Shown piece by piece: positions 433 through 55,535 of a stretch of 64,000 bases of DNA. Within the stretch, counting starts at the first letter, position 1. Each line of letters opens with the position of its first letter. Source of the DNA: Eukaryota sp. TZLM1-RC (Eukaryota > Protista > Metamonada: BaSk clade); assembly GCA_040285825.1 (NCBI GenBank), contig JAUPSS010000001.1, positions 2,542,001-2,606,000 of the forward strand. Reading direction: 5' to 3'. The translations under genes and the position numbers were made by a program. A model generated the notes under the pieces. The model saw only the letters and a list, made by a program, of their open reading frames with translations. It did not search any database and was not told where the DNA came from.

Positions 433-598
433 TGAAATCAGAAACAGTATAATTAGCAAGAGCAGTTGCGCAAGAAGATATATTCAAGGTTCCGTTGCGT
501 TTATGACCTAGTTTTTGAAGTGAGGGAAAAGTGAAAACCACCAAATCCAAGGGTTGGCAAGTGTAATATTTCATAGATGAGCTCTTAATTTTCAAAAC

Positions 599-2236
599 AT
601 CACAGACACCCGGCTGTGTCACATCTATTCACTCGGTCATTTGCTCTTAACTCACTACTGACCCCTTTTGCAGTGCAACAAATTCGGGCTGACCTTCCTT
701 TGGTCACCGAGATTTGTCATGAAGCTTCTTTATTGCTTCTTTTCTTTTGAATTTTCCGTTGGCATTTAGAGCTTTAGTAGAACAAGATGTATGGTATCTT
801 TTTATGACCGTCATCACCACTGTTTTTTCCCAAACCTATCCACCTCCAAGAAGACAACGCCAATTACAACTTATCTTTTACTTTTTTAGTGGATTTTTCC
901 CTAAATCCCCACAAGACAGGTTCCTTATTTCGACAGAGGAAAATTCTCTGATTCCCTATAGAAATTCATTCATTATTTTCCTCAATGATTGGCTGCAGGC
1001 ACAGAGATGCAATTTTATCAATAAAGAAGGACTTTCTTCTTGCCTTGCTTGTCGGGCTCATCAATTTGCATTGAATATTAAGACAAGTTTTTCCAAAATT
1101 GGTCAATCCTGGACAGAGAACTTCGTTCCTGCTCATTGTAGAGCTCTGGATAAAACGAATGTCTTTGCCAATTATCTTCTCTCTCTTATACCAGCTAAAC
1201 CCTTAGCACCTCTAGAAGCTGGTGAACCAACAAAAGGTGAGCAACTCGAAGAAGTAGTTATTCATTCTAATCTTGAGCCATACATCAATTTTCATCTTAA
1301 TAATCCTGGAAAAAGATTCTTTTTATTAAATGCATGTAATTTTATCTTGAATCTCTTTCACAAATTTCCTACCAATGCATCTTTACTATTTTACAATGGC
1401 GAAATCACCTTTTCATCAAAGGAAATCGGTGAGTTTTTTCGCTTTGATCTGAAAATTTCGCAATACTTTCTCACTTCCTTCTCTCATTTACATTGTAGGA
1501 ACAAATTTAGAAAAATATCATTGGCTTCTCACAAAAGTTCTCAATTTTTTAAAATACCCTCACAAATTTTGTAAAGCTTGAAGAAATTCCCATTTGTTGA
1601 AGAAACATATTCAAAAACAAAGCTTATCAAAAATTTAATACAAATAAATCAGGTTTAAAAAATAGATTTAAAAAACTATATTCAAAACTAACAATAATGT
1701 GCTGCTTTTGAATTTCGAAGGTTAAAATAATGATTCAGAAAACACAGATGAGTGGACGAACCACTGAAAAAGAAAAGAAGATCAAAAAAAGAAATAAAAG
1801 TTGACCCTGATGCCAACAAAACCAGAGAAGTAGAGTTGAAGGGTACTAAAAAATTTCCTGTCGAAGACGCAAAGAACTACTCGAAATAATTGATAAAAAT
1901 CCCCTCATTGGCGTTGCTCTGGGCCAATCTAGATTATGTGGTTATTTCTTAAGTGATAACCAATGTGGAGTTATCCGTTGTCCAACTGGCAGGAGGTACA
2001 TGACAAAACATTCACCCAGTAAACACTTGCTCAACCAATATTCCGTTCAAAGTTTCGACCAATTTTTGACCCATTGGAATTTGGTCAGAAGGAAAATGTA
2101 CTTGGAAAACAATTGGCAGAAAGGAAATAATTAAATTTGATAACCGCAGACCAAAAGAGAGACGGTTCCGAGAGAGTTTCAACAAATTTCAAAGGCTGGC
2201 TGGACATCCTAAAAACTCTACCTTGCTGTGGGATCT
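599..2236 (+). pseudogene. Degenerate Fanzor copy, same family as 22679-24633, 3'-truncated
   Basis: Collinear similarity to 22679-24330 (e.g. RALVEQDVWYLFMTVITT, RAHCRALDKTNVFAN). Start codon is ATC instead of ATG, there are several stops and frameshifts, and RuvC-I reads IGVALG (D to A). It ends where a CRE-like fragment begins. Confidence 0.85.
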
Positions 2237-21851: not shown

Positions 21852-22019
21852 TACTTTTACCTAATAAAGATTTCATCAATTGAATCACTGAAAATAATCT
21901 ATTCAGCTTCCAGTAAATTTGAAATTCTTGGTTTCAGAATATAATAAATAATATTAATATGGTTGAATTTTAGGTTGAATACAAATCCCTTTTTTTCCCT
22001 TCCCGGTTTGAAAACGGTT

Positions 22020-22472
22020 TGAAAGTGCTGCTTTGGGGGTAGTTGTTGCCTAATTGGTAGATTTGTTCAGACCAAATCCATAGCAATTACCACAAGCAGT
22101 GAGTGCCAATGTATGATGAACACCTACACTACAAGAAACAATGTTAGAGAAGAAGGGTAACTGGAAATTCTTTCTACCAGTAGCATGAGGAGGAAAATAT
22201 CGGGAGAGAACACCAGGTGTTGGATATGAGAATAAAGAAACAGAAGGTGCAACAGAACCAATAAGGTTGATTCGTTTTGTGCGAGACCAGAGAATTGAGT
22301 TTCCTTTAGATATGTAGCGAATTCTGTGAGATGGTACAGATAAGGCAAGAAAATCGTGAAGAGGGAGGAAGAATACACCGCCAAATCTATCCTCAAAACC
22401 AACAAAGAAACGTTCTTTAGACAAAGAAGTATCATGGACTAATCTGTTGATGATGCTGAGAGCGTCTTTCAT
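22020..22472 (-). CDS. MJ1316/DUF504-like RNA cyclic-end recognition domain fused to an RCC1-like repeat; frameshifted or truncated
   Basis: IINRLVHD...FFVGFEDRFGG...VPSHRIRY...LWSR (MJ1316 pattern), then SVGVHHTLALTACGNCYGFGLN. Adding one base near 22060 restores YQLG of the RCC1 repeat. Confidence 0.7.
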
Positions 22473-22678
22473 GAGTTACATAGAGTTGAAATTCCAGAAA
22501 CTATTACAAAGGATACCTAGTTTATGAACCTAGTTGATGAAGTGAGGGGAAAGTGTGGGAATAGTGAAAACCTCCCAAAACCAAGTTGAGGGTTAAAAAC
22601 CTCCCAGAATAGGCAACCAGAAGTCGAAAATGGGTGACAAGTGTAAAATTTGATAGATGAGCTCTTTATTCTCACTAC

Positions 22679-24633
22679 ATGTCAGACACCCCCTCTGTAT
22701 CACGTGTATTCACTCGGTCTTGTGCACTTAACTCGCTGCTGACCCCTGCAGCGGTGCAACAAATTCGGACTGACCTTCCTGTGGTCACCGAGATTTGTCA
22801 TGAAGCTTCTTTATTACTTCAATCTTTTCTTCTAAATTTTCCGTTGGCATCTAGAGCTTTAGTGGAACAGGATGTATGGTATCTGTTTATGACCGTCATC
22901 ACCACTGGTTCTTTTCCTAAGCCTTCCACATATAGAGGCCAACGCCAATTACTCCATATCTTTTACAATGGATTTCTTCCTGAATGCCCACAAGACAGGT
23001 CTCTTGTTTCTGTGTGGGAAAATTCTTTAGTGCCTTACAGAAATTCATTAAATCTTTTTCTCAATGCTTGGCTGCAATCTCAGAATTGCAATTTTATCAA
23101 TAGAAAAGGGCTTTTTCCTTACCTTGCTTGTCGGGCTCGTCAATTGGCGTCTAACGTGAAGACAAGTTTACCTAAAATTTGTCAATCCTGGACAAAAAAC
23201 TTTATTCGTGCTCATTGTAGAGCCCTGGATAAAACAAATGTCTTTGCAAATAATATTCTTTCACTTTTGCCAGATGAACCACTAGCCCAACCCGAGGAAG
23301 TAGTAGTTGATTCTGTTCTTGAATACCACATCAATTTCAATTTGAATAATTCAAGAGAAAGATTTTTTTATTGAATGCATGTAAGTTTATCTCGAATCTC
23401 TTTCAAAGATTTCCTACCACTGCCTCCCTACTGTCCTCACATGATAAAATCACTTTTTCATCAAAGGAAATTAGTGAGCTTTTTCTCATCAATCTTAAAA
23501 TTTCACAATACTTACTCACTTTCTTTTCTCATATGCATTACTGGAAGAAATTCAGAATAATACCTTTAGCTTCTCATAAAGGTTCTAAATTTCATGAGGT
23601 ACCTTCACAAATTTTTCACTCTGTGAAAAAATTTCCAATTATTGAAGGATCATCTTCCAAAACAAAGTTTATCAAAAATACAAGTCTGAAACGAATATTC
23701 AAACAATGTCCTTACCAAAAATTCAATATCAACAGAAAAAGTTTGAAAAATAGATTTAACAAAATTTTATTGAAAACTAATGGTAATGAACTGCTTTTGA
23801 CCTTTGAAGGTAAAAATAATGTCTCAGAAAACACAGATGAGCTGGATGAACCACCGAAAAAGAAAAGAAGATCAAAAAATGAAATGAAAAGTGACCCTAA
23901 TGCCAACAAAACCAGAGAAACACAGTTGAAGGGCACTAAAAAAATGCCCCGTCGAAGACGTAGACATCCAGTCGAAATTTTACCTGAAAGCCCCCTTATC
24001 GGCGTTGATCTTGGCCAATCAAGATTATGTGGTTACTTCTTAAATGATAATCAATGTGGAGTTATTCCTTGTCCAACTGGCAGAAGATACATGACAAAAC
24101 CTTCACCCAGTAAACACTCTCCCAACCAATATTCCGTTCAAAATTTCAACCAATATTTGAACCATTGGAATTTGGTCAGGAGGAAAGTGTATTTGGAAAG
24201 TAATCGCCAGAAATGGAAAATAATTAAATTTGATAACCGCACACGAAAAGAGAGACGGTTCAGAGAGAGTCTCAACAAATTTCAAAGGCTGGCTGGACAT
24301 CCTGAAAAACTCTATCTTGCTGTTGATTCTGCTAATTTCCCTTCTCATTGCTGAAAAGTCAATCGATATGGATCAGCAAGGGCTTTCAGAAAATGGTTGT
24401 GTTATCAAAAGGACGTGAAGCACTTGTCAACCAGTGAATTTAATACAAGCAAAATGTCAAGTTGTTGCATGGCCGAGAATATTCAAGCAGGCTCATGGCA
24501 GATGCGTATTTGTACTGAGTGTCAAATAGTATATGACAGAGATATTTCCGCTGCAAAAAATATTCAAATTAAGAAGAAAGCGGAATTGTGGCCGGAAAGA
24601 TACATTTCCCCAGATGCTCTGTTGAGGAGATGA
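22679..24633 (+). CDS. Fanzor (eukaryotic TnpB/Cas12-like RNA-guided nuclease), Fanzor1-type, ~651 aa once two lesions are repaired
   Basis: RuvC-I LIGVDLG; RuvC-II SEFNTSK; zinc finger SSCC...CTEC; RuvC-III DRDISAAKNI; TDG-like KTNG; NLS-like PKKKRR. Lesions are a T7 run at 23363-23369 (the paralogue at ~1315 has one more base) and an in-frame TGA at 24352. Confidence 0.9.
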
Positions 24634-24845
24634 ATGGGGAACCTGAGCATACAGAAACAAAAACTTTTGAGACCGATCTACAAATACCTTAGTAGCATTT
24701 GGTAGATCCACTTAGATACATCAAGTCGCGAGGCTTTGTTCTGTGAAAGCAGTAGGTGTATTTAAGTGAGGTAGCCCATTGATGAAGATCATGATTGTCT
24801 TTGTCAAATGATGCTACATGTCTCTTACAACCTGTGAGTAGACAT
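24633..24845 (+). ncRNA. Candidate Fanzor omegaRNA scaffold
   Basis: Starts at the Fanzor stop codon. Nested flush helices with G-U pairs on the + strand, GCGA and GAAA tetraloops, and a candidate pseudoknot (see findings). Ends approximate. Confidence 0.75.
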
Positions 24846-24913
24846 TGAGAAAGTTGAAAACAGGAGTGAATTTCACAGGGGAATGCATGATAAGTGAAAT
24901 TCACAGTAATATG

Positions 24914-24949
24914 GAATTGTGTCAAGAATTGTGTCAAGAATTGTGTCAA
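24914..24949 (+). repeat. Three exact tandem copies of GAATTGTGTCAA
   Basis: Directly visible at 24914, 24926 and 24938. Confidence 0.9.
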
Positions 24950-25032
24950 CTTTTTGAACTTACATAATCCAAGACTTACTGCTCCTACTGCTGGTCACAA
25001 CAACCCTTTCACAACTTATTACATCTTCAACA

Positions 25033-27810
25033 ATGAGTCGGTCCAACTCTCGTCTTAATCAAGCTATTGTATCAGATGCTGCTTCAGATATCCTTACCCC
25101 ATATAAAAGAAAAGTTCCTTCACGACCCATTGATCATGGTCAAAACAAAGATCAACGGGAACTATCTGCCACTCTCCATGAATTCCACTGTACTGATTTC
25201 CAACCCCAAGCCCTTGACCCTGATGATTGCCCATTTGTCAATGTCGGAGCCAACTTTTGGAGGCTTTTAGCTGACTCTACCCCTACTGATTTCAATGATT
25301 GGATGGAGATTCGGCTCGCTGGCCAACCTGTCAACGTCATTGTTCCTGACACCATTGTACTTGGGGATTCTGATAAACTAGCTTGGTTTGCCTCTTCCGA
25401 AACTGGAACTCTCTTTAAACGAGTCAATTTTGAACCAAATGATGTGATTTCTGAACTTTTCAAATCTTCAACTGCTGCATTTTGCCTTCAAAAGAGGGTA
25501 TCACATTTCAGAGATTGGTCAACTGAAACTAGCATTGTTGATTTGAAAGAAGTTACTTCTCTTTTGTCAAAGCCAAATGAACCTGTAATCCTCCAACAGT
25601 TTGTTAAACCCAGAGGAATAAAGCCAACTGTGTATAGAATCTATTTAGAAAGGGAAAAGGCCCCAAAAATCATATCGGTTACTTCTGAAATTAAGTTTGA
25701 TGATTTAAACGTGCGGGATGTGAATTTAAGGTTTCTGGTCAACTCCCATGATGCACCAACTTCAGTATTCACTGTCAATAATGCTGCTTTAAGAAGTGTA
25801 ATCGATTCTGCTATTAATATGAAGGAAGCTGCTCAGAAAATTAATTTGGCTTGGAATATTACGCATTTTGTTGCAGATTTTATTATTAATGATTCTAACA
25901 ATTCTTTTTTTGTTCAATGTAAAGTCATCCAATCAGAATCAAGATTAGTACAGCAGCTAAGTTCAACTAATTTGTTAGGAACTGATCAACCAATTGAGGA
26001 TGAGGTTGTCAAATCTGGTTCTTTTGTTAAAAAATGTCAAAAATATGCAAAATGTCGAATGTGTTATCTGGGGTTTCCTTCCAAGGAATTTAAACACCAG
26101 TTAACAATCAATATGATTAAACAGACAATTAATCATCTGATTGATAGGGGAGTTTTTTTGAACTACTTTGGCAGAGTCGAACTAATTTCAAATCGTAATG
26201 ATTCTTCCAAATACGAAACCTGTCGTGTGTGTAGCTCTTGTTATAACTTGTTTTTAATTGAAAATGAATTACGCAGCATTGAATCAAATTTTGCAATACA
26301 TACAGGAATTCGTTTGACTTCAAATTCATATTCAGGAGGTTCTTATGCTTCTCTGGATTCTTTGCCGGTAAAGTCGAATGCACTGACAGGGGAAAGATTA
26401 ATGTCTTCAAGTGTGATGGAACACACAGATCTTGACGATTTGAATATCAACATCTCCCCTTCGAAAACTGAATTCAAATGCTATCGAGCCCTAATCTTTA
26501 TTCATGATGTAGTTGGTCTTACTTTTTCCTCAAATATTGACCTTGACTCTTGTGAACTGCAGTCTTCACTATTTGATGAAAATTTCACTTTTCCCATATG
26601 TGTCACCCAAGAAACCTCTGAAATTGCAATTATGAATACCCCAAGAGCTAAGCGGAGTTCTGAATCTAATTCTGAGGAAAATGATACCGTCTATAGAGGC
26701 TTTATTAATAAGCTGGTTACCAAATACTTGTTTTGTAAAGAAGATGATTTAAAGAATTTTTTGGCTTATTTAGAATCATTCTATTTCTTCTTATTTACTG
26801 GGAAAAAATCATTATTTGGCTCTTTTCTTATAGATATCAAATCTCTTAGTAAAAACCCTTTCCACAAGCAAGAATGCTCTGCAATACTAAACTCAGCGTC
26901 TGAAATGCCATGTAGGCTTCGAATAACCCTATTGTGCCAGGAAATCGAACAATTTAACTTCAAAAAAGCAGTGTTGTTCCCAAAAAGTGAATTTAAGCAT
27001 GTTTATTACCCTTTGGATTCTCAATTTTTCACAGTGGATCCTATTCCTCAGGAATTTTTGAATATTTTACCTTACAAATCACGAACTGAAAGGGATTTTG
27101 CCAAAAAATTCAAAGTTTCGAAACGAGAATTGTCTCAACCAAACGACCATCAAATTGACAATCAAATTGATTGTTCTTCAATGTTCTCTCCTTCAGAAGA
27201 CCAGCCCAGACTTGAAGATCTTGATTTTGATGATCTGGAGCTTGAACCAGCTCAAGAAATTTCTGTTTTTCTTTCACTGGAACTCCACTCTATTTACAAC
27301 TTGGTAGATTCTGCCATTGCTCTAGGTGTCCTTGATGGTCACCCTTCAGAAATGGAGTTGTTCATTTCTTTTATTGAAGATTTTTCATTCACCATATCAC
27401 TTTCTCCTTCTTTAAATTTTCAAGTCAACAAATCAATTGATGTTTTGTTTAAGACTTATTCCCTTTCGAAATTTTTGTCAGAATTACCAAATCTTAACTC
27501 AGTCCCAATCACATTCAAAGCTAATGACCAAGTTATTGGAAAAACTGCAATTAATCTATCCAAGTTTTTAAACAACACGCAATGCCCTTTACCCTTCAAC
27601 AAGCCAGAAGCTTTTGATATTGATTTATTTAAAGATGGAGTTGTAGTTGAACAGTATATGGGAGAGGAAATGCCTTGGATTTCAACTGAACTGGTCATTC
27701 ACGAAGAGGAAAACGAATCAGAAGAGTTGACGAGTGAATATTTTGGATTTGCTTGTAATGTAACATTAAATAATATAGGTGATGGTACTTTTTTAACAAC
27801 ATTAAGTTGA
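25033..27810 (+). CDS. Hypothetical protein, 925 aa, with paired CxxC motifs
   Basis: Long ATG-started ORF containing KCRMC and CRVCSSC; family not recognised. Confidence 0.75.
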   Translation: MSRSNSRLNQAIVSDAASDILTPYKRKVPSRPIDHGQNKDQRELSATLHEFHCTDFQPQALDPDDCPFVNVGANFWRLLADSTPTDFNDWMEIRLAGQPVNVIVPDTIVLGDSDKLAWFASSETGTLFKRVNFEPNDVISELFKSSTAAFCLQKRVSHFRDWSTETSIVDLKEVTSLLSKPNEPVILQQFVKPRGIKPTVYRIYLEREKAPKIISVTSEIKFDDLNVRDVNLRFLVNSHDAPTSVFTVNNAALRSVIDSAINMKEAAQKINLAWNITHFVADFIINDSNNSFFVQCKVIQSESRLVQQLSSTNLLGTDQPIEDEVVKSGSFVKKCQKYAKCRMCYLGFPSKEFKHQLTINMIKQTINHLIDRGVFLNYFGRVELISNRNDSSKYETCRVCSSCYNLFLIENELRSIESNFAIHTGIRLTSNSYSGGSYASLDSLPVKSNALTGERLMSSSVMEHTDLDDLNINISPSKTEFKCYRALIFIHDVVGLTFSSNIDLDSCELQSSLFDENFTFPICVTQETSEIAIMNTPRAKRSSESNSEENDTVYRGFINKLVTKYLFCKEDDLKNFLAYLESFYFFLFTGKKSLFGSFLIDIKSLSKNPFHKQECSAILNSASEMPCRLRITLLCQEIEQFNFKKAVLFPKSEFKHVYYPLDSQFFTVDPIPQEFLNILPYKSRTERDFAKKFKVSKRELSQPNDHQIDNQIDCSSMFSPSEDQPRLEDLDFDDLELEPAQEISVFLSLELHSIYNLVDSAIALGVLDGHPSEMELFISFIEDFSFTISLSPSLNFQVNKSIDVLFKTYSLSKFLSELPNLNSVPITFKANDQVIGKTAINLSKFLNNTQCPLPFNKPEAFDIDLFKDGVVVEQYMGEEMPWISTELVIHEEENESEELTSEYFGFACNVTLNNIGDGTFLTTLS

Positions 27811-29180: not shown

Positions 29181-29491
29181 ATTGTTCATGACTCAGTTCG
29201 TGATCAATTATATGCCATGTGCAAAAGTTTCAATATAGAGGCATTTATTGAGCCACTAGTACGTAAGCTGTCTTCAGATCAAACTGATGATTGCTTTGGT
29301 AAAAGAAGGGCAGATTTAGTAGCTCCAGGGATCGATGGTGTTCTCAATGTTGTAGATGTTGTCTCAGTTGATGTTTGCAAAAATTCTGCTGCTCGTTTAG
29401 TGTATTCCGCTGATTCGCCGTTATCTAACGCCGAAAAAAAGAAGATAAAAAAATATGAAGAACCTTTGGCACAGTTAGGTAGCGTGGAACA
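29181..29491 (+). mobile_element. CRE-like non-LTR fragment, 5' half (split by the LTR element; continues at 36396)
   Basis: HDSVRDQLYAMCK...RRADL...VVDVVSVD...AEKKKIKKY...GSVEH, rejoining VKYQFVPF in frame. Confidence 0.88.
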
Positions 29492-29627
29492 TGATGCTCT
29501 ATCCATATATGATAACAAAGAATAAGGAATAATTTATTAGAATTTCACCGGCCCTTATAAAGGCCATCACTAGTGAACTATGTTATATAAATATAAATGT
29601 ACTAGACTAATTGTCCACAGTACAACA
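29492..29627 (-). repeat. 3' LTR (136 bp)
   Basis: 135/136 identical to 36256-36391 (T29608 vs C36372). Confidence 0.95.
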
Positions 29628-32600
29628 CTACCTTTTCCCTCTCTTAGATCTCGAACGAGAGCTACGAGTACTGACTGCAGGGGAATTAGTCTTAGATTTG
29701 GAATTAGAAGATACCTTCCGTTTCCTGGTAGTGTGAGGACTAATAGAGCGCAAATATGTTTGATATGCCTCAGTGCTTTTGACGTCAGCAACTGGGACAG
29801 ACGAAGTCTCGCCGCCATACCAAACTGCGGTACAATAAGGAACTTTATTATTGTTCGAATCTACGTAATCAAAGTGATCTATAATTTTAACGATTACAGA
29901 TTCTTCCATATCGCCAGCAGCAATATTCTTATGCCAATCAAGATCTTCTTTAGGGAAGTCTGAAAGGTATAGTTTACAATGATTTATACATGCCGTAGAC
30001 ATCGAACCAGTGACAAGATTCTTGAGTAATAAACTTTTATTGGATTTAACTTCTTCAACGAGAAAAGGGCCAGCGAAGCAACCATGGAGTTTACCATTAG
30101 TCTTTAATCGCAAAACTAAGTCACCTTTATTAAAAGGGTTCCTATGTTTGTTAACTTCAGGCAGTTGTTGAGCTTGCCTGAGCTCTGCCTCTTCTCTCTT
30201 CTTTGAAATCCTTTCAAGTTTTGCTTCAAGATCTTTAACAAAGGGAATATTAACATTAGCTGATTTTATTAATTCAAACATATTACTAGGATCAGCTCTA
30301 GGGCTGTGGTCGCTACCAAACATTAAATTGTAGGGCGAATGACCAGTAACTCTACTAATAGTTGAATTGATTTGAAGTTGTACAATTGGGATATATTCAC
30401 TCCAATTGCTATAATCGCCAGAGTCCACCAAAATCTTTCTTAGACTTTGTAAGATGTCTCTGTGTCGTCTTTCTACTAAACCATTGCTTTGTGAAAAGCT
30501 AGTTAGTGAACGACTTACTTCAATGTTTAATAAATCGCATAACCCTTTGAATATGGCATTTGCAAATTCAATACCATTGTCACTATGAATCAACAGTGGG
30601 ATACCAAAAATTGATACTACACTCCATAGGAGGTGATTGGTTGCCTCCACTGCATTCAATTCCTTTACAGGGCAAATGATCGTATACCTAGTGAACGAAT
30701 CTACGAAAACTATTAAATATTTGAATCCATTATCATCTTGTTGTAATGGTCCAATAGTATCTGCGTTTAATCGTGCAAAAGGTCGATCAGCCCAAAGAGA
30801 GCCAGATGATTCAATGACTTTTTTAGGCACATGTGCCGTCTTTTGACATGCTGGGCATCTCTTAATATGATTAATCATGTCTTTGCGCATGTCGGGCCAA
30901 AAGTAATCACTATTGAGTAATTTCTTTACGCTAGTCGTCACACTAGGATGGCCAACATTTGCATGTCCATGAATGATAGTTAAAGTCTGCTTCTTTAAAC
31001 TATCTGGGATAACAATCTTCCCACGATTGTTGGTATACAATTGAATATCTGAATTATAATTGTAATCTTTATAATAATCAGGATTTGAATCAACATCTAT
31101 AAGTTGTTCTTGCCTAATCTTTGAGATCCAAGTGTCAAATAAATCAAATTTAGTATCCTCAACTGCTTCTTTCAATGCAGATAAGCTATTGATCGTGGGT
31201 AGCTCAATTGTGGACGGTTGAGTAATATCATCCCTTAACAAATTAACTCTAGTTAATAAATTTAAATAGGGTAATTGTTCTTCAACTCTGTGAGGTGCCA
31301 AGTTTCTCACTTGTTGGACTCGAGGGGTTTTGGGTTTGGTATCAACCAATTTAGACAACATGTCTGCCCAATAATTCTCCTCGCCTGCCGTGTGGACTAC
31401 ATCAAAATTGAATTCTGACAATATTGGTAGCCACCTCTTCACAATTCTGTTCTTTTCAGGAGCTGATATAAGGTATGCTAAATTTCTATGATCAGTGAAA
31501 ATAGTTAATTTCCTCGAAATCAAATAATTTTCTAAACTACTGTCAGTGAGAATTAGTAAAATTGCATACAACTCTTTCTGAAGTACAGACCAATTCTTTT
31601 GTGAAGTTGATAATAATCTGCTAAAGAAGGCAATAGGTACAACCTTTCTCTTAATTAGCGGTGTCGTAGGATCTTTAGGTGGGTTAGCTTCTTGCCATAT
31701 TACTCCACCTACAGCCACATCAGACGCATCCGCACTTATTAAAATGTGCTTGTCTTCTGAGGGCAATTCAAGAGGGATATTTGCTTTAATAAGGTTTATA
31801 ATCTTACCAAAAGCCTCGTCATGATCAGAAGTCCACTTGATCTTTGACGGTTTGTTTCTGGTTAATTTGTTGATTGGTTCTATCAAGTCAGACAAATTTG
31901 GCAACCAGTCACGTATATAATTGATCGAGCCTATAAAACTCCTAACTTCAGGTAATGTCCTGGGTTTGGGTAGGTTGATCAGTCCCTCGATCCTAGATTC
32001 ATCTATATGTCGGGTTTTGTTTACAAAAATACTACCTAGAATTTTTATTTCATGTTTGCAAGTGGTAAAGCTACACTTGGGTAGGCCAAGGTTAACTCTA
32101 AAACGTTTGGCGCGTTCTAGGACCGTACCTACTCTAGATAGAAATTCATCCAGGGTTGAAGCTACTATTATTATATCATCGATATAAATAAATACACCCT
32201 CAGAATCAAATATTTCCATCATCATGTTTTAGAAGACTGCAGGAACGTTCTTCAAACCAAAACAAGCCCTTTTAAAACTGATCGACATTCCGGGAATTGA
32301 TATGGTAGTTTTATCAATATCCTCTTCTGCAATTTTGAGCTGCCAAAATGCCTTAGGTAAATCTAGAGTTGCTATATAATTAGCTTTACTTAGAAACTCT
32401 AAAATGTCGCTAATCCTGGGCAAATTTGCCTCTACAGGTTTAGTTAAATCGTTTACTCCACCAATACCACTAAAATCGCCAGTTAATCGTGGCTTCCTGT
32501 GATCAGGGTAAATCACAAGACAGATGGGACTACTGAATTGAGACTTTGCGGGCACAGCAAATCCATTACGGATCAATTCGTTAAAAATTTCCTCAGCTAC

Positions 32601-32681
32601 CCGTTGTTTTTCTGGGTTTAATTTTCGAGGTTTCCTTTTGACGACCTTACTTTCGTCATAAAATGGGTCATCGGCTGACAA
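29628..32681 (-). pseudogene. pol: Gypsy pol: RT, RNase H, integrase, GPY/F and chromodomain-like tail; in-frame TAA at 32229-32231
   Basis: LDLPKAFWQ, FGLKNVPAVF*NMM, YIDD, ADASD, HHCC (H...H...CPAC), DTIG/SDNG/NGLVER, FAGPF, IIDH...AVW. Confidence 0.93.
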
Positions 32682-34705
32682 TCAATTCCATCCGGGTGAG
32701 GTAGCCCACTAAATACATTTCTATATTTTTCGAGTAGCACGACTAGGCGTTCCTCGTCCCTAATGTCATCCAGGCATATTCTACAGCCCAACTCATCTAA
32801 CTCATGTCTAAATGTGGAATGCCCAAAATCATTACCTAAGTCTGATTTATTACTCAATTGTTCAATGAATCTAATTGGTTGACAAATTCTATTATCAAAC
32901 TCACATTCAGCATTTAAGATGGTGCGATGTTCGCGATCCAAATTAATATTAAAACCGTGCTCCGTGCGTAGCCCCAAGGTTTGTAATAAGTCTCTTCCGA
33001 TCAAAAAATTATTGGTACCAGGAATGATCTGGAATTCGATCCTTAAAAACACTTGAGTGGCCAAGCTACCCACATTTAGAGCAACAACACCACTTGCACA
33101 TCCCAGGGTCGTGGAGCGAATACCTTTTGCCGATAAGTATTCGACAGTCTTATTGTCATTAACTGTCATATTACATTTAGAGGCTAAATCCATTGATAAT
33201 GCTGAAAATGCAGCTCCATTATCAATTTCGCCTTGTACTTCCACGTTATTTATGGTGCAGGTTAACCAAAGTTCCCCGTTAAAACTTTCTTGGTCCTCTG
33301 CTACCCAGGATAGTCTAACACTGTGGATAGAACCCACAGGATTGGATGACTCTCTAAATCTTTTTAATGGATTTAGGTGATTATAATTCGAATCTGTTTT
33401 GCTCATTTTATAAATGGATTTGATTGAATTATTTGTAAGGTTATTGTTAAAAGATGTATAATCATCTGGTTTATTACTACTACTTTTACGTTTTCTATCA
33501 CGTCTTCCACCTCCATGACGCTTTTTTGAACCAGGTCTTCCCACTAATTTAAAACATTTCTCTTCAGGATGTTTATTGGTATTACATAAGTTACACCATT
33601 GCTCTGAAGGAATGGGTCGACTACTTACTCTAGGGTTCTTAAAAGGACCTTTTGACTGGCTTCGTCCTTTTTGCGCAGGAGCGTGAGCACCAAAAGCTGT
33701 TCTAATCAAATTCATGTCTTTGATCGAGGATTCAAGGTTGACCTTGTTAACAAATGCGTTACCTAAATCGTAAATCGCATCGCCCAGTTTCTCGTTACTC
33801 GAATCAAACTTATCAATCCAAATGATATATGTGTCCATCAATTGATTGTTTGTTTTGTCGTTAATAGTTTCGAGAAATCTCTTTGCTGGGTAGACGACAG
33901 ACGGATTACCATCCGTTCCAGGCATAATTGTAGAGCGTCGAATTATATATATGATCTGCTCTATGAAGGCTGTCCACGAAGATTCAGCAGTCATTCTGCG
34001 ACTGATCTCAGGTGGTCTTACAGACCTTAAAGCCTTTTCATCATCGGTAGGGTATTTGTACTGGGTGCTGAGTAGCAAATATTCCCAGATTTCGGCGTCA
34101 GATGGGTTGTTGCCTAACACGTTTGTACGGCCTCCATAAAAACTCTGCCATTCTGCGATGACCTTACCCTCGATCATAAATCTCAAATACAAAGGGTCAA
34201 CTTCGAAGAACATAGATCTAACGAAGTCGTACTGATGAACAGGTTGACCGTATTTGGTGATCGGCGTAAATGCTCTGGTGGGTCCATCGCGATCCCTAAC
34301 TGTTTTAGCCCAATTGCCAAAGTTAAGAACGAAGTCGAAGATCTTCTTGGCGTCAAACGCTTCATTTAACTTAACTAGGCATCTAAGTTTGTCGTCTATT
34401 CTTTTCCTCAATTTCTCCTCGTCTGTTACAGGAGTTCTATAAAGACCGAGGGTGTCGACGAGAGAATCTCTAGGAGCATTCGTTCCTAGGGGTTGCGTGG
34501 GTATAGATGATTTTATAACAGATGCTTGTGTAGGAGTTGCTTCACAAGAAGCTCTCCTAGATGCCAGAGGCCCTATAGAAGGTGTACCAAATAGGTTCAT
34601 ATTCCTCTCTTCTGAAGGCAATGTTTCGCCCAACTTAATGATAAATCTTGTCTTAGGAGGTTCCTCCTGCACAGGTACAGTCTGGGCTGGTGGTCTTAAA
34701 TCCAC
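32618..34705 (-). CDS. gag: Gypsy gag-protease
   Basis: CCHC knuckle CNLCNTNKHPEEKC; aspartic protease-like IDNGA...LIGRDLL. Out of frame with RT near 32670. Confidence 0.85.
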   Translation of the reverse strand: MDLRPPAQTVPVQEEPPKTRFIIKLGETLPSEERNMNLFGTPSIGPLASRRASCEATPTQASVIKSSIPTQPLGTNAPRDSLVDTLGLYRTPVTDEEKLRKRIDDKLRCLVKLNEAFDAKKIFDFVLNFGNWAKTVRDRDGPTRAFTPITKYGQPVHQYDFVRSMFFEVDPLYLRFMIEGKVIAEWQSFYGGRTNVLGNNPSDAEIWEYLLLSTQYKYPTDDEKALRSVRPPEISRRMTAESSWTAFIEQIIYIIRRSTIMPGTDGNPSVVYPAKRFLETINDKTNNQLMDTYIIWIDKFDSSNEKLGDAIYDLGNAFVNKVNLESSIKDMNLIRTAFGAHAPAQKGRSQSKGPFKNPRVSSRPIPSEQWCNLCNTNKHPEEKCFKLVGRPGSKKRHGGGRRDRKRKSSSNKPDDYTSFNNNLTNNSIKSIYKMSKTDSNYNHLNPLKRFRESSNPVGSIHSVRLSWVAEDQESFNGELWLTCTINNVEVQGEIDNGAAFSALSMDLASKCNMTVNDNKTVEYLSAKGIRSTTLGCASGVVALNVGSLATQVFLRIEFQIIPGTNNFLIGRDLLQTLGLRTEHGFNINLDREHRTILNAECEFDNRICQPIRFIEQLSNKSDLGNDFGHSTFRHELDELGCRICLDDIRDEERLVVLLEKYRNVFSGLPHPDGIDCQPMTHFMTKVRSSKGNLEN

Positions 34706-34743
34706 CCAATCTGGTGCATTTTTAGATCCTCTAGGGACCCCTG

Positions 34744-36270
34744 CTAGTTATGATCATATGGAAGGCAACTGCTCTTTATTAAGACATTCTCAAAAACATT
34801 TTGGTCGGGCCAGCTATCAACCCATGCCTTAAGTTTAGCCATCCATGCATCAGGGTATACTAGTTTTAACTTGTTGGGGCCAACACGTTGCTCTTTCAAT
34901 TCAATTACCCTTGTGCCTATTTCTCTAATATAGGACTCTTTGGTATGAAATTGAAGGGTGTCACCTCGAGATTCATCGAATCTGCCCCCAAGCATAATAA
35001 AAATGTCCGCAATGGAATCTTTTGGGTGTACATTCTCCACTAGGAAATGCCTTACGACGCCTCTAAGGTTTCTACCTTGTTGATTATGAGGATACATTTT
35101 AGCTATCCAAAATAGTCTGTCGTAAGCTTCTTGATTTCCACTGAAATATATTTTGTGGTCATCAATTGCATCCCTATGCCATTTGGCAGGCCTGGGAGTA
35201 GCAGCTTGATACTTTGAACGAGGTGCGCTAAAATAGCAATCCTCGACTGCACTCATTCCACACGAGACTGCCGAATCGGTAAGATCATCCAATCTCTTTA
35301 AAAGATTTGGACTTTGATCATAACTCTCGTAGACGACGTCGTCAAGTGTTTTGCCGTGGGCTTCCCCAAAGAGGAAGGGCCAACGTTTCGCTAAATAGTC
35401 ACGTCGCACCTTCTCACATTCGGCTGGGTCTACGTCTCCCGCAAGACGCTCTGACTCATTCTCAGCCATTTTTAATAATTCGTCATCACTCCAATCCTTT
35501 ACATCATCAGGAGGATTGGCGATGAGGTCCAATAAGAAATCTCTAGTTACAGCCTCAACTGCTTTAGCTAGTTTCCTTCGGTAAAGACCCTGAGAAGTCC
35601 TTTCCGTAGATGGAAAACTAGGAGTTGGATTAGAAGAATTGGGTGTATGAGGTGGTTCATCATCGTTCTCATCCCCTCTCCTACTGTAGTTCTGATCAAG
35701 AGATCCTCTGGAATCACTTTGAGGTTCCTCACTTGAGCTGGTGTCAGAAGTAGGTGAGGAGGGAGTTTTACGTGAGGAGCCAGTCGTAGACTGTTGCTCG
35801 CCTTCACCTCCTTCACCTTCTGTACAAGCGTCAGATTTGGTACTTACAACAAACGCTTTGAATCTCCGTTGCTCGCTCGGAGTGAGAAAACTCTTCCTAC
35901 AAGGAAGGAGCTCCGAGGAGTTGTCGGGGTATGTGTATAGTTCTGACACATCAACAACGTGGTTACCTCTCTCCGTATTAGGGAGGTGACTTCCTTTCTG
36001 GGAGGTAGGGCTCTCCTCAGTGCGAAGTTCACTCTCCTTATTGGGGAGGTGGCTTTCTTTCTGAGAGGCAATGCTCTTCTCAGCGGAAAGCTCACTCTCC
36101 TTTGGAGGATTACTCTTCCCGAAGGAAGGATTACTCTCCGTAAGTGGAGGATTACTCACCGAGGGCGGTGGATTGTTCTCCTTCAAAGAAGGGACATTAC
36201 TCTTCCTCATAGAGGAAGGAGGGTTATCATTGTGGCTATTCAAGCCATTAATTAATGATGCTCTATCCAT
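34744..36270 (-). CDS. Extra ORF upstream of gag inside the LTR element (unknown function, low-complexity N-terminus)
   Basis: About 508 codons from the ATG (MDRAS) lying inside the 5' LTR. Contains a 21-aa tandem duplication (KESEL...SQK.SHLPN). Confidence 0.7.
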   Translation of the reverse strand: MDRASLINGLNSHNDNPPSSMRKSNVPSLKENNPPPSVSNPPLTESNPSFGKSNPPKESELSAEKSIASQKESHLPNKESELRTEESPTSQKGSHLPNTERGNHVVDVSELYTYPDNSSELLPCRKSFLTPSEQRRFKAFVVSTKSDACTEGEGGEGEQQSTTGSSRKTPSSPTSDTSSSEEPQSDSRGSLDQNYSRRGDENDDEPPHTPNSSNPTPSFPSTERTSQGLYRRKLAKAVEAVTRDFLLDLIANPPDDVKDWSDDELLKMAENESERLAGDVDPAECEKVRRDYLAKRWPFLFGEAHGKTLDDVVYESYDQSPNLLKRLDDLTDSAVSCGMSAVEDCYFSAPRSKYQAATPRPAKWHRDAIDDHKIYFSGNQEAYDRLFWIAKMYPHNQQGRNLRGVVRHFLVENVHPKDSIADIFIMLGGRFDESRGDTLQFHTKESYIREIGTRVIELKEQRVGPNKLKLVYPDAWMAKLKAWVDSWPDQNVFENVLIKSSCLPYDHN

Positions 36271-36391
36271 ATATGATAACAAAGAATAAGGAATAATTTA
36301 TTAGAATTTCACCGGCCCTTATAAAGGCCATCACTAGTGAACTATGTTATATAAATATAAATGTACTAGACCAATTGTCCACAGTACAACA
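36256..36391 (-). repeat. 5' LTR (136 bp)
   Basis: Direct repeat of 29492-29627. Confidence 0.95.
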
Positions 36392-47131: not shown

Positions 47132-47650
47132 CTAGTTTCTTTGTGGTCTCTGGAACGCTTCTGGTCTTGTTCCATAGTAGTGCTCACTAATTGCAATTTC
47201 TAACTGATTTAGTGATGTAGAAATGTCTCTAGACCAAACTTGATTACATTCCGGACAACTGAAATAGGCGTTGTGAACTTTAACTTCACCATCAACTTCT
47301 CGATAGATCTTTTGGTGTAGCATCTTGCAGCAGTTCACCTTTTGAGATGTCATATATTCATCTCCGATCTTCACATAAGCAAATGAACATTGTAACAACT
47401 TGAGAAACGCCTTACGTTCAGTTTTCACTTTTTGACGTGATGTACCACCACCTCCATTGCCAAACCACACCTTTACTTCTCGACCGTTTGCAAATTTTTT
47501 CACTTTGTTGATAATGGAGCTAATTCTTTTCTGTTTTCTTATAAAGAAGTCAAATGTATTTCTCCTCAATGCTTTTCGAGCACTCAGATTTAATTGCTGC
47601 TTTAGCAATGATCGTCTTACGTTATTATCTTCATGGTCCTTATGGTCACC
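47132..47650 (-). pseudogene. Fanzor1-type C-terminal fragment (second family), lacking RuvC-I
   Basis: VWFGNG, GDEYMTSQ (RuvC-II), NCC...CPEC zinc finger, WSRDIST (RuvC-III), RPEAFQR tail. Confidence 0.85.
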
Positions 47651-47722
47651 GATAGTTGTTATTTTCGAAACCAAAATTCTAAAGCTTGTCAATAGTTCGA
47701 AAATTTTAGTAAAGGGGATCAT

Positions 47723-55021: not shown

Positions 55022-55535
55022 TTATTGAGGTCTTCTCAAAGCTAGGGGTCTAGTGTTCAAAAAGTATTCGCGTACTGCAATCTCCCACTGGTTTCTCGAT
55101 GCAGAGATATCTCTTGACCAAACCATCCCACATTCTGGACATGCAAAATAGGCTTTAGACTTTTTCATTTCTCCATTCTCTATGAAGTAAAGGTCTTCAC
55201 GCAAAACTTTGCAACAGTTCATTTTGGATGATGTTTAATCTTCATCGCCATCCTTTACGGTTGGAAATCGAGCCTTGAGATACTTCAGAAAACGCTTTCT
55301 TGGTGTTTTCACTCTTTGACGGGATGTTCCATCACCTCCTTTCCCAAACCAAATAATCACTTCACGATTTTCAGCCATGTTTTTGATTTTCTGGACAAAA
55401 TGGCTGAATTTCTTTTGGCGATGGATAAAAAAGTCGAAGCGATTACGGCGAACAGCTTTTCTTTTTCCTTGACGTAGATAGTGGTCCAATACACTTTGTC
55501 TTTCAGTGTTGTCTCTTTGAGGATTCATATTAAGC
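55022..55535 (-). pseudogene. Fanzor1-type C-terminal fragment, paralogue of 47132-47650, with in-frame TAA at 55235
   Basis: IWFGKGGDGTSRQRVKT, GDED*TSSKMNCC, CPECGMVWSRDISAS, RPLALRRPQ. Confidence 0.85.

Follow-up and report, generated by a model that had tools for sequence, protein, structure and literature searches.

The interrupted gene in the window, by which we mean the whole analyzed stretch of 64,000 nucleotides, is best read from its sequence as a dead pseudogene and an ordinary member of a divergent Fanzor1 family of Skoliomonas, and the junctions of this family carry scars that suggest how the nuclease acts. On the pattern of these junctions, we consider it rather probable that the Fanzor cuts the empty site and that aborted gap repair leaves the scars, the window copy being a dead member of the family.

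The host, Eukaryota sp. TZLM1-RC, is the soda-lake protist Skoliomonas litria, and the neighboring genes RPB2 and HECT indicate a eukaryotic genome. When compared with predicted proteins, the middle piece of the gene matches those of S. litria at 92-97% and that of Skoliomonas sp. GEM-RC1 at 58%. The three open reading frame pieces (22679-23374, 23350-24351 and 24355-24633), which were searched separately, give one protein of 651 amino acids by scripted read-through, with X at both breaks, in agreement with the original prediction. The RuvC triad (D444 in GVDLG at 24007, E587 in SEFNTSK at 24436 and D622 in DRDISAA at 24541), the CC..CxxC zinc finger, which is atypical (SSCC..CxxC), and the NLS-like PPKKKRR at 23851-23871, within the basic insert before RuvC-I, were also found as it had described them. 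The coordinates of the features are given in Table 1.

Table 1. Features of the Fanzor1 element and of its paralogue, in positions of the window.
Feature	Position	Strand	Remark
Older, more decayed paralogue	549..2236	+	78% identical; 3' end cut off by a non-LTR retrotransposon fragment
ATTA, predicted TAM	21953..21956	+	Contains the left TA of the TA duplication
Left copy of the 8-bp target duplication, TAATATGG	21955..21962	+	Joined via TGG microhomology; left end lacks its first 3 nt
Element left-end remnant, TGGTTGAATTT...	21960..22004	+	Identified by blastn to the 3,753-bp copy L010
Cargo ORF, 140 aa	22050..22472	-	MJ1316 RNA cyclic-end recognition domain and RCC1-repeat fragment; head-to-head with the Fanzor
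Fanzor1 pseudogene, 651 codons	22679..24633	+	WED/REC half, basic insert, RuvC, finger
Candidate omegaRNA scaffold, ~240 nt	24669..24908	+	Multi-stem fold closed by a GAGAC/GTCTC helix; 5' limit provisional; ends CACAG-TA
Element right end, GTGAAATTCACAG	24894..24906	+	Short imperfect TIR with the left end; TA next
Right copy of the 8-bp duplication	24907..24914	+	TA and the first 6 nt of the flank
Predicted guide	24909..24925	+	Right flank, which varies; length set by analogy with characterised Fanzor1s (PMC10432273, PMC13565253)
Triple 12-mer in the flank	24914..24949	+	First unit is guide positions 6-17 and ends in the Fanzor1 cut zone

The unit to which the gene belongs was defined from eight other S. 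litria loci and three GEM-RC1 loci, and reaches 3,753 bp in copy L010. Its order is the left end C(T/A)GTGGTTGAATTT, approximately 1.5 kb of captured pieces, the Fanzor, approximately 270 nt of non-coding DNA, the right end GTGAAATTCACAG and TA. The short ends of the ~3.75-kb element read CTGTG and CACAG with TA flanks; the TIR is very short in S. litria, and the ends of the GEM-RC1 copy L005 form a perfect 11-bp inverted repeat. The gene had been called stand-alone, which holds in that the element encodes no transposase, as had also been stated, but not in that the gene is part of an element of ~2.95 kb (~21960-24906) that carries a divergent cargo ORF. An internal deletion of ~825 bp follows the left-end remnant in the window copy, and a templated 11-bp duplication, in tandem at 22000, lies at its joint. 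The boundary of 24845 given originally was too early, because the element runs to 24906 and then TA; the terminal hairpin (24866-24904) and the guide were left out. Metagenome contigs leave the element at 24905-24908, their flanks differing.

The cargo ORF matches Pfam PF04457 at 45.3 bits and is open in four copies, and homologues of this size were found only in S. litria. It is absent from the GEM-RC1 elements, where the left part of L005 is unrelated to the S. litria element and lacks MJ1316, and it is deleted in two S. litria copies including the one with an intact Fanzor ORF. Another captured host-gene piece is the C-terminus of CCT (E 5.6e-17). The right end lies 66-127 nt upstream of the start of a same-strand host gene in six of the 11 copies (24906-25033 in the window; also L003, L006, L010, L014 and L015).

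An apparent TA duplication and terminal inverted repeats are present in the complete copies L005 and L010, and the element is predicted from its ends to be a non-autonomous one of the IS630/Tc1/mariner type. The left part holds no serine recombinase ORF, which together with the TIR-like ends and TA flanks marks the carrier as a non-IS607 element. The right end reads CAG-TTA instead of CAG-TA at L004:10304 and L015:11905. The right flanks at L011:12221-12231 and L003:12325-12333 start after TA with the left-end-like CTGTG and CAGTG, and no matching inverted end was found downstream of either; they are possibly excision footprints or insertions beside related ends.

At each of the six S. litria junctions that could be resolved, the left TA follows AT (background 0.11), and in two GEM-RC1 copies it follows GA. 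Because these bases are constant while the right flanks vary, ATTA and GATA are predicted as the TAMs of the two species. In the set of 11 left/right junction pairs, six copies, including that of the window, combine an exact or near-exact right end with a damaged left end and a target duplication of 7-13 bp (8 in the window, 11 in L011, 13 in L014 and L015, 7 in L003 and L006). These duplications consist of TA and 5-11 flank bases placed at the left joint, mostly via 3-5 nt of microhomology. The chance of an 8-nt match as in the window is 0.009, and the chance per copy ranges from 0.0004 to 0.011; 110 mismatched pairs taken as a control gave a median of 3 and a maximum of 8, reached once. The complete left ends of L010 and L005 show TA only, and a clear duplication is absent in L001, L002 and L004. 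The pattern was stated beforehand, and both 13-bp cases then fitted it; L014 and L015 are 5'-truncated copies with the duplication after ATTA, the former joined flush and the latter through ~32 nt of filler.

Since copies that lack the left TIR still have a target duplication, neither cut-and-paste insertion nor gap repair after excision alone fits. A transposase needs both ends, and repair of an excision leaves no right-flank bases at the left, which places the break downstream of ATTA, within the flank of a site that was empty. In the mechanism proposed here, complete elements would be inserted at ATTA, with duplication of TA, by a trans-acting transposase of the IS630/Tc1/mariner type, as their ends suggest. 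Transcription of the 3' region is predicted to continue beyond the right end and TA and to enter the flank, so that a scaffold of ~240 nt would carry a locus-specific guide. The Fanzor would then read ATTA and the guide match, which occur together only on an empty allele or excised chromatid, and would cut ~14-21 nt downstream, a distance taken from SpuFz1 and GtFz1. The right broken end would invade the occupied allele, from which the element would be copied from its right end leftwards. If this copying is aborted or the ends are rejoined by microhomology, the product would keep its right end exact, have its left part truncated or deleted, and carry a duplication of TA and a few flank bases. 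Template switching in the same repair could account for the captured CCT, RCC1 and MJ1316 fragments. The window copy was probably laid down by such repair and decayed afterwards. SpuFz1 cuts at 16/17 and 20/21 nt (PMC10432273), and all the scar duplications are shorter than this distance. The triple 12-mer in the window flank is possibly an end-joining scar; tandem duplications of this kind over the predicted cut zone (12x3 in the window, 16x2 in L001) occur in 2 of the 11 right flanks relative to a background of 0.7%, an enrichment of about tenfold or more (p=0.003, post hoc).

An intact 3' end, variable 5' ends, a 3' hairpin and the capture of gene fragments are traits of Helitrons (PMC3627910), and one-ended copying in rolling-circle mode, started at the 3' hairpin by a Helitron2-like replicase, in which the Fanzor would not be the cause of the scars, is the alternative that survives best, although we regard it as unlikely. 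Such a replicase is how Bao and Jurka read CRe-1 (PMC3627910), one of the Fanzor-bearing CRe-1/2/3 elements of Chlamydomonas reinhardtii that share with the present family truncation at the 5' but not the 3' end, deletions inside the element, filler DNA where the left end is joined, and variable 7-19-bp duplications straight after a fixed 4-nt target. However, the CRe elements have Helitron2 ends, a TTTT target, introns and full-length copies without a duplication, whereas the Skoliomonas elements have TIR-like ends and TA flanks. Assignment to the Helitron2/HLE2 class was rejected because the repeat is terminal and symmetric (the perfect 11 bp of L005) rather than asymmetric and subterminal, and because TA stands on both sides of the complete copies. 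In addition, only 1 in 200 of the Fanzor-free Helitron2 elements has a duplication (PMC3627910). In Chlamydomonas, Bao and Jurka found the 7-19-bp duplications in elements that bear a Fanzor but not in those without one, and did not settle on a cause (PMC3627910); our literature search found no paper that explains them by Fanzor cutting.

Slightly less likely still is that the truncated copies were retroposed in trans by the non-LTR retrotransposons of the genome, which also give duplications of ~12 bp in S. litria. Target-primed reverse transcription leaves 5' truncation, microhomology and 7-20-bp duplications. The junction geometry is the same, and L003 carries a 12-bp duplication made by an active non-LTR family. 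Against this, the right joint has neither poly(A) nor a donor guide, and the copies include 1.1-1.5 kb of DNA ahead of the Fanzor start codon, spanning the divergent gene. Their site is also that of the complete copies (ATTA, and GATA in the sister species), whereas the single retrotransposon insertion looked at lies at a site other than AT^TA. The reading that we retain is that the Fanzor cuts the empty site.

The 3' region from which the guide RNA would be produced is a candidate omegaRNA scaffold judged by sequence and predicted folding. As had been proposed, the gene has its own candidate 3' of the coding region, although the boundary had been set about 60-80 nt too early. The region is structured and keeps its base pairs between species. 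The folding z value is -3.8 in the window and -5.0 in GEM-RC1. Between the two species, 82% of aligned bases are identical in the 3' region, compared with 71% in the RuvC coding DNA and 55% in the upstream DNA. All 15 stem changes between the species keep pairing, five of them through changes on both sides, and the indels fall mostly in loops or stem tips; this test covers two lineages only, and the structure was derived from those same sequences. A search of the region against Rfam gave no match. By analogy with characterised systems (PMC13565253), TA is predicted to join the scaffold and the flank from 24909 to be the guide; the right flank differs in every copy.

The protein belongs to Fanzor1 with near certainty, as a divergent clade rather than a new architecture. 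The best PDB match of the family profile is SpuFz1 (E 1.6e-9, profile positions 258-606), the last ORF piece passes the Pfam Cas12f1-like_TNB threshold (PF07282), and the classification as a divergent Fanzor made originally was upheld by this search and by the RuvC fold in the predicted structure. The AF2 model of the intact S. litria protein P0026 is mediocre (pLDDT 56, pTM 0.34), and its RuvC part matches Cas12f, TnpB and Fanzor with Z of 12-13.6. Among the top structural matches, only SpuFz1 and PpFz1 align over ~350 residues, from 8 to 651, with a high rmsd. The length of 651 aa falls within the 600-800 aa that characterise Fanzor1 proteins with their enlarged REC half. When the N-terminal 300 residues were folded alone, GtFz1 ranked first of 48,161 chains (Z 7.0, 192 residues, rmsd 4.3); Foldseek of the same model placed SpuFz1 first, not significantly, and hhalign of the N-terminal half with the Fanzor1 REC gave E 0.0019 at a probability of only 14%. 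The N-terminal half is thus most likely, according to these models, a divergent Fanzor1 WED/REC half, where the WED motif TNG aligns with TDG of SpuFz1. The REC matches, weak but consistent, led us to reject an unknown N-terminal domain that would define a new family. Of the suggestion that the family may be undescribed, the part that stands is that no published description of it was found; the N-terminal half is not a new domain. Fanzor2 of IS607 (~500 aa, with a serine-recombinase TnpA and GG ends) was rejected because ApmFz2 matches the RuvC part only and TnpA is missing.

The Fanzor criteria used are those of PMC10711439, where DPG at RuvC-I is near-exclusive. S. litria and GEM-RC1 have DLG, the nearest relatives in Skoliomonas sp. 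RCL have DPG, and SpuFz1 has DPN; with DPG kept in the RCL relatives, DLG is probably a local change rather than a disqualifier. The rearranged RuvC-II glutamate is kept, as E587 aligns with EYKTS of SpuFz1, about six residues before the zinc finger. The invariant glycine before RuvC-II is also kept in the family and lost only in the window copy. That the family Fanzor has lost cutting, to become an RNA-guided binder or to handle RNA ends with the MJ1316 cargo, is improbable: DLG in place of DPG, the atypical zinc knuckle, the long basic insert and the cargo ORF open in four copies would be consistent with it, but neither species has lost any of the three catalytic acids, and the cargo is dispensed with in the copies named above and sits among other captured fragments.

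The window copy itself appears to be dead. The two breaks that had been noted were confirmed: the T7 run at 23363-23369 is 1 nt short, as judged from the paralogue, which reads RFFLLNAC across this site, and from seven other copies with an 8-base run, which is T8 in three of them and contains a C in the other four. The second break, TGA at 24352, probably comes from CGA, with CG at that codon in 7/7 other copies. The extra base and the C are also present in contigs of an independent metagenome study. A programmed frameshift or an alternative code was rejected, because the sister copies carry both the additional base and CG, and because the host genes follow the standard code. Contrary to what had been claimed, the breaks are not the only lesions; relative to the family majority there are 18 further missense differences, including G550D (24325-24327), where every relative including distant Fanzor1s has Gly, and S146F at a nearly invariant serine. 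The private changes are 14 missense and one stop relative to two silent, which makes the decay look neutral. Since a conserved RuvC glycine is lost as well, two fixes are unlikely to suffice, and the copy is not readily repairable; with an intact natural paralogue (P9112_002841) at hand, repair is unnecessary. The S. litria assembly is nanopore-based (10.1101/2023.05.03.539051), and the T7 run could be a nanopore slip, although three other copies of the same assembly have T8. A nearly live window copy, whose breaks are sequencing errors or sole defects, is most improbable, because the homopolymer position of one break and the intact triad, scaffold and cargo ORF are outweighed by T8 in those copies, a stop that is a CpG transition, the excess of private missense changes, and the loss of conserved residues at G550 and S146.

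Intact copies, for which a genome search had been proposed, do exist. The S. litria protein P0026 (P9112_002841) is an uninterrupted 651 aa, of which 624 residues are the same as in the window copy, and GEM-RC1 has the natural uninterrupted P0050 and P0054 (648 and 646 aa); the intact natural GEM-RC1 proteins include GEMRC1_005786. A 2.1-kb non-LTR piece with a 12-bp duplication (L003:10227-12321) lies inside the right end of the P0026 copy and parts the scaffold from CAG-TA and the guide. Because this is the only intact-ORF copy seen in S. litria, a fully live copy was not seen. The family reads as a young, multicopy one, with dozens of copies and 82 members in a single 90% cluster. The divergence between the two species at the three codon positions is 0.35, 0.22 and 0.57, and its concentration at third positions indicates purifying selection between species.

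A HMMER scan of 1.84 billion representatives returned Skoliomonas proteins only, followed by weak unnamed environmental proteins with TDG and DPG, and a small unrooted tree without named references set the Skoliomonas sequences apart from two environmental proteins. No close relatives were found in IMG/VR or GTDB, and a viral or bacterial origin was rejected on this ground. Look-alikes in the ESM Atlas are giant-virus Fanzor-like clusters, which we take as a lead only. A DNA pattern scan of JGI metagenomes gave three matches, one of which when read was unrelated, and none had homology to the element beyond the pattern. In metagenome samples X1-X3, the element of window positions 22010-24908 is present at ~98% identity, and no contig covers the downstream host gene at 85%, which reflects either a different strain or species sharing the element, or low coverage or filtering.

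The nearest relative in Skoliomonas sp. RCL, P0095 (RCL1_008468), is a natural fusion of 1,323 aa that comprises a leader with a 2A-like DVEPNPG, an Exo1/XPG-family nuclease (XPG_N, XPG_I) and, after an acidic linker, a complete Fanzor1; at L013:7923-11980 a small deletion splits the fusion. Joined to a Fanzor, a nuclease that resects 5'-3' would favor homing, and no paper on an Exo1/XPG-Fanzor fusion was found. On the minus strand at L010:2219-5245, a protein of 1,008 aa combines a DEDDh-type 3'-5' exonuclease domain with DUF8286, which is also seen in Fanzor-like ESM Atlas clusters. RuvC halves of a second Fanzor family lie on the minus strand of the window at 47135-47719 and 55025-55513, 44-50% identical to P0082 and P0118 of RCL, where at least seven copies of the 592-aa P0082 suggest, from sequence, that this family is young and active.

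Among known systems, Spu-1 with SpuFz1 of Spizellomyces punctatus (PDB 8GKH, PMC10432273) is alike in having a single nuclease ORF between inverted repeats without a transposase, a conserved sequence just outside the left end on its 5' side, from which an xxTA TAM is predicted, and a 3' omegaRNA with a guide from the flank. It differs in protein sequence (~12% identity with the Skoliomonas protein in the structural alignment), in TAM (CATA, compared with the predicted ATTA/GATA), in its repeats (30 bp compared with 5-11 bp) and in its conserved 3' region (~90 nt compared with ~240 nt), whereas, of the two, Skoliomonas alone has the captured cargo, the basic insert before RuvC-I and the SSCC knuckle. 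GtFz1 of Guillardia theta (PDB 9CER) gave the top match to the N-terminal model, at a modest Z, and has a multi-stem omegaRNA, but its RuvC-III residue is N, and inverted repeats are missing from its loci. PUl-4, a Mariner-type Fanzor1 element (PMC3627910), is likewise Fanzor-only with TIRs and a TA duplication; its TIRs match confirmed Mariner elements, whereas for Skoliomonas the transposase type is predicted from the ends. In the restorative homing of TnpB in IS200/IS605 and IS607 (PMC13565253), the empty site is cut and the element is copied back by recombination, as proposed here; the experiments covered by that review concern prokaryotic TnpB/IscB only, whereas the Skoliomonas case is eukaryotic and read from junction scars.

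Fanzor-only elements with TA ends and a 3' omegaRNA are already known from Spu-1 and PUl-4. The Skoliomonas family adds a new host lineage and a divergent clade, together with its long scaffold, its cargo and the evidence from the scars. The range of Fanzor1 is extended to Metamonada; no paper mentioning both Fanzor and Metamonada was found. What Fanzors do biologically is still given either as unknown or by analogy with bacteria (PMC10432273; PMC13565253), and homing has been proposed, with no demonstration found in the papers searched. It is a real possibility, which stops short of being probable, that the scars are a natural in vivo record of homing, in which ATTA-adjacent empty alleles were cut, elements copied back without a transposase and host pieces captured, that the CRe duplications open since 2013 have the same cause, and that the clade repeatedly recruited end-processing partners (the Exo1/XPG fusion in sp. 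RCL and the MJ1316 cargo). The homing idea is testable, since the family provides intact natural proteins, predicted TAMs that differ between species and a scaffold that is defined, and since an organism in culture carries dozens of its junctions. As an editing tool, it would be one more Fanzor1 of ~650 aa with a long RNA.

A sigma-70 scan was empty and is irrelevant here. The window also contains a Ty3/gypsy element at 29491-36391, with 137-bp LTRs that are 99% identical and an extra ORF of ~510 aa without a Pfam match. Outside the Fanzor element, the host gene at 25033-27810 encodes a protein of 925 aa that belongs to no Pfam family, where the Atlas look-alikes are mostly ciliate proteins and the structure gives a weak ATP-grasp-like hint.
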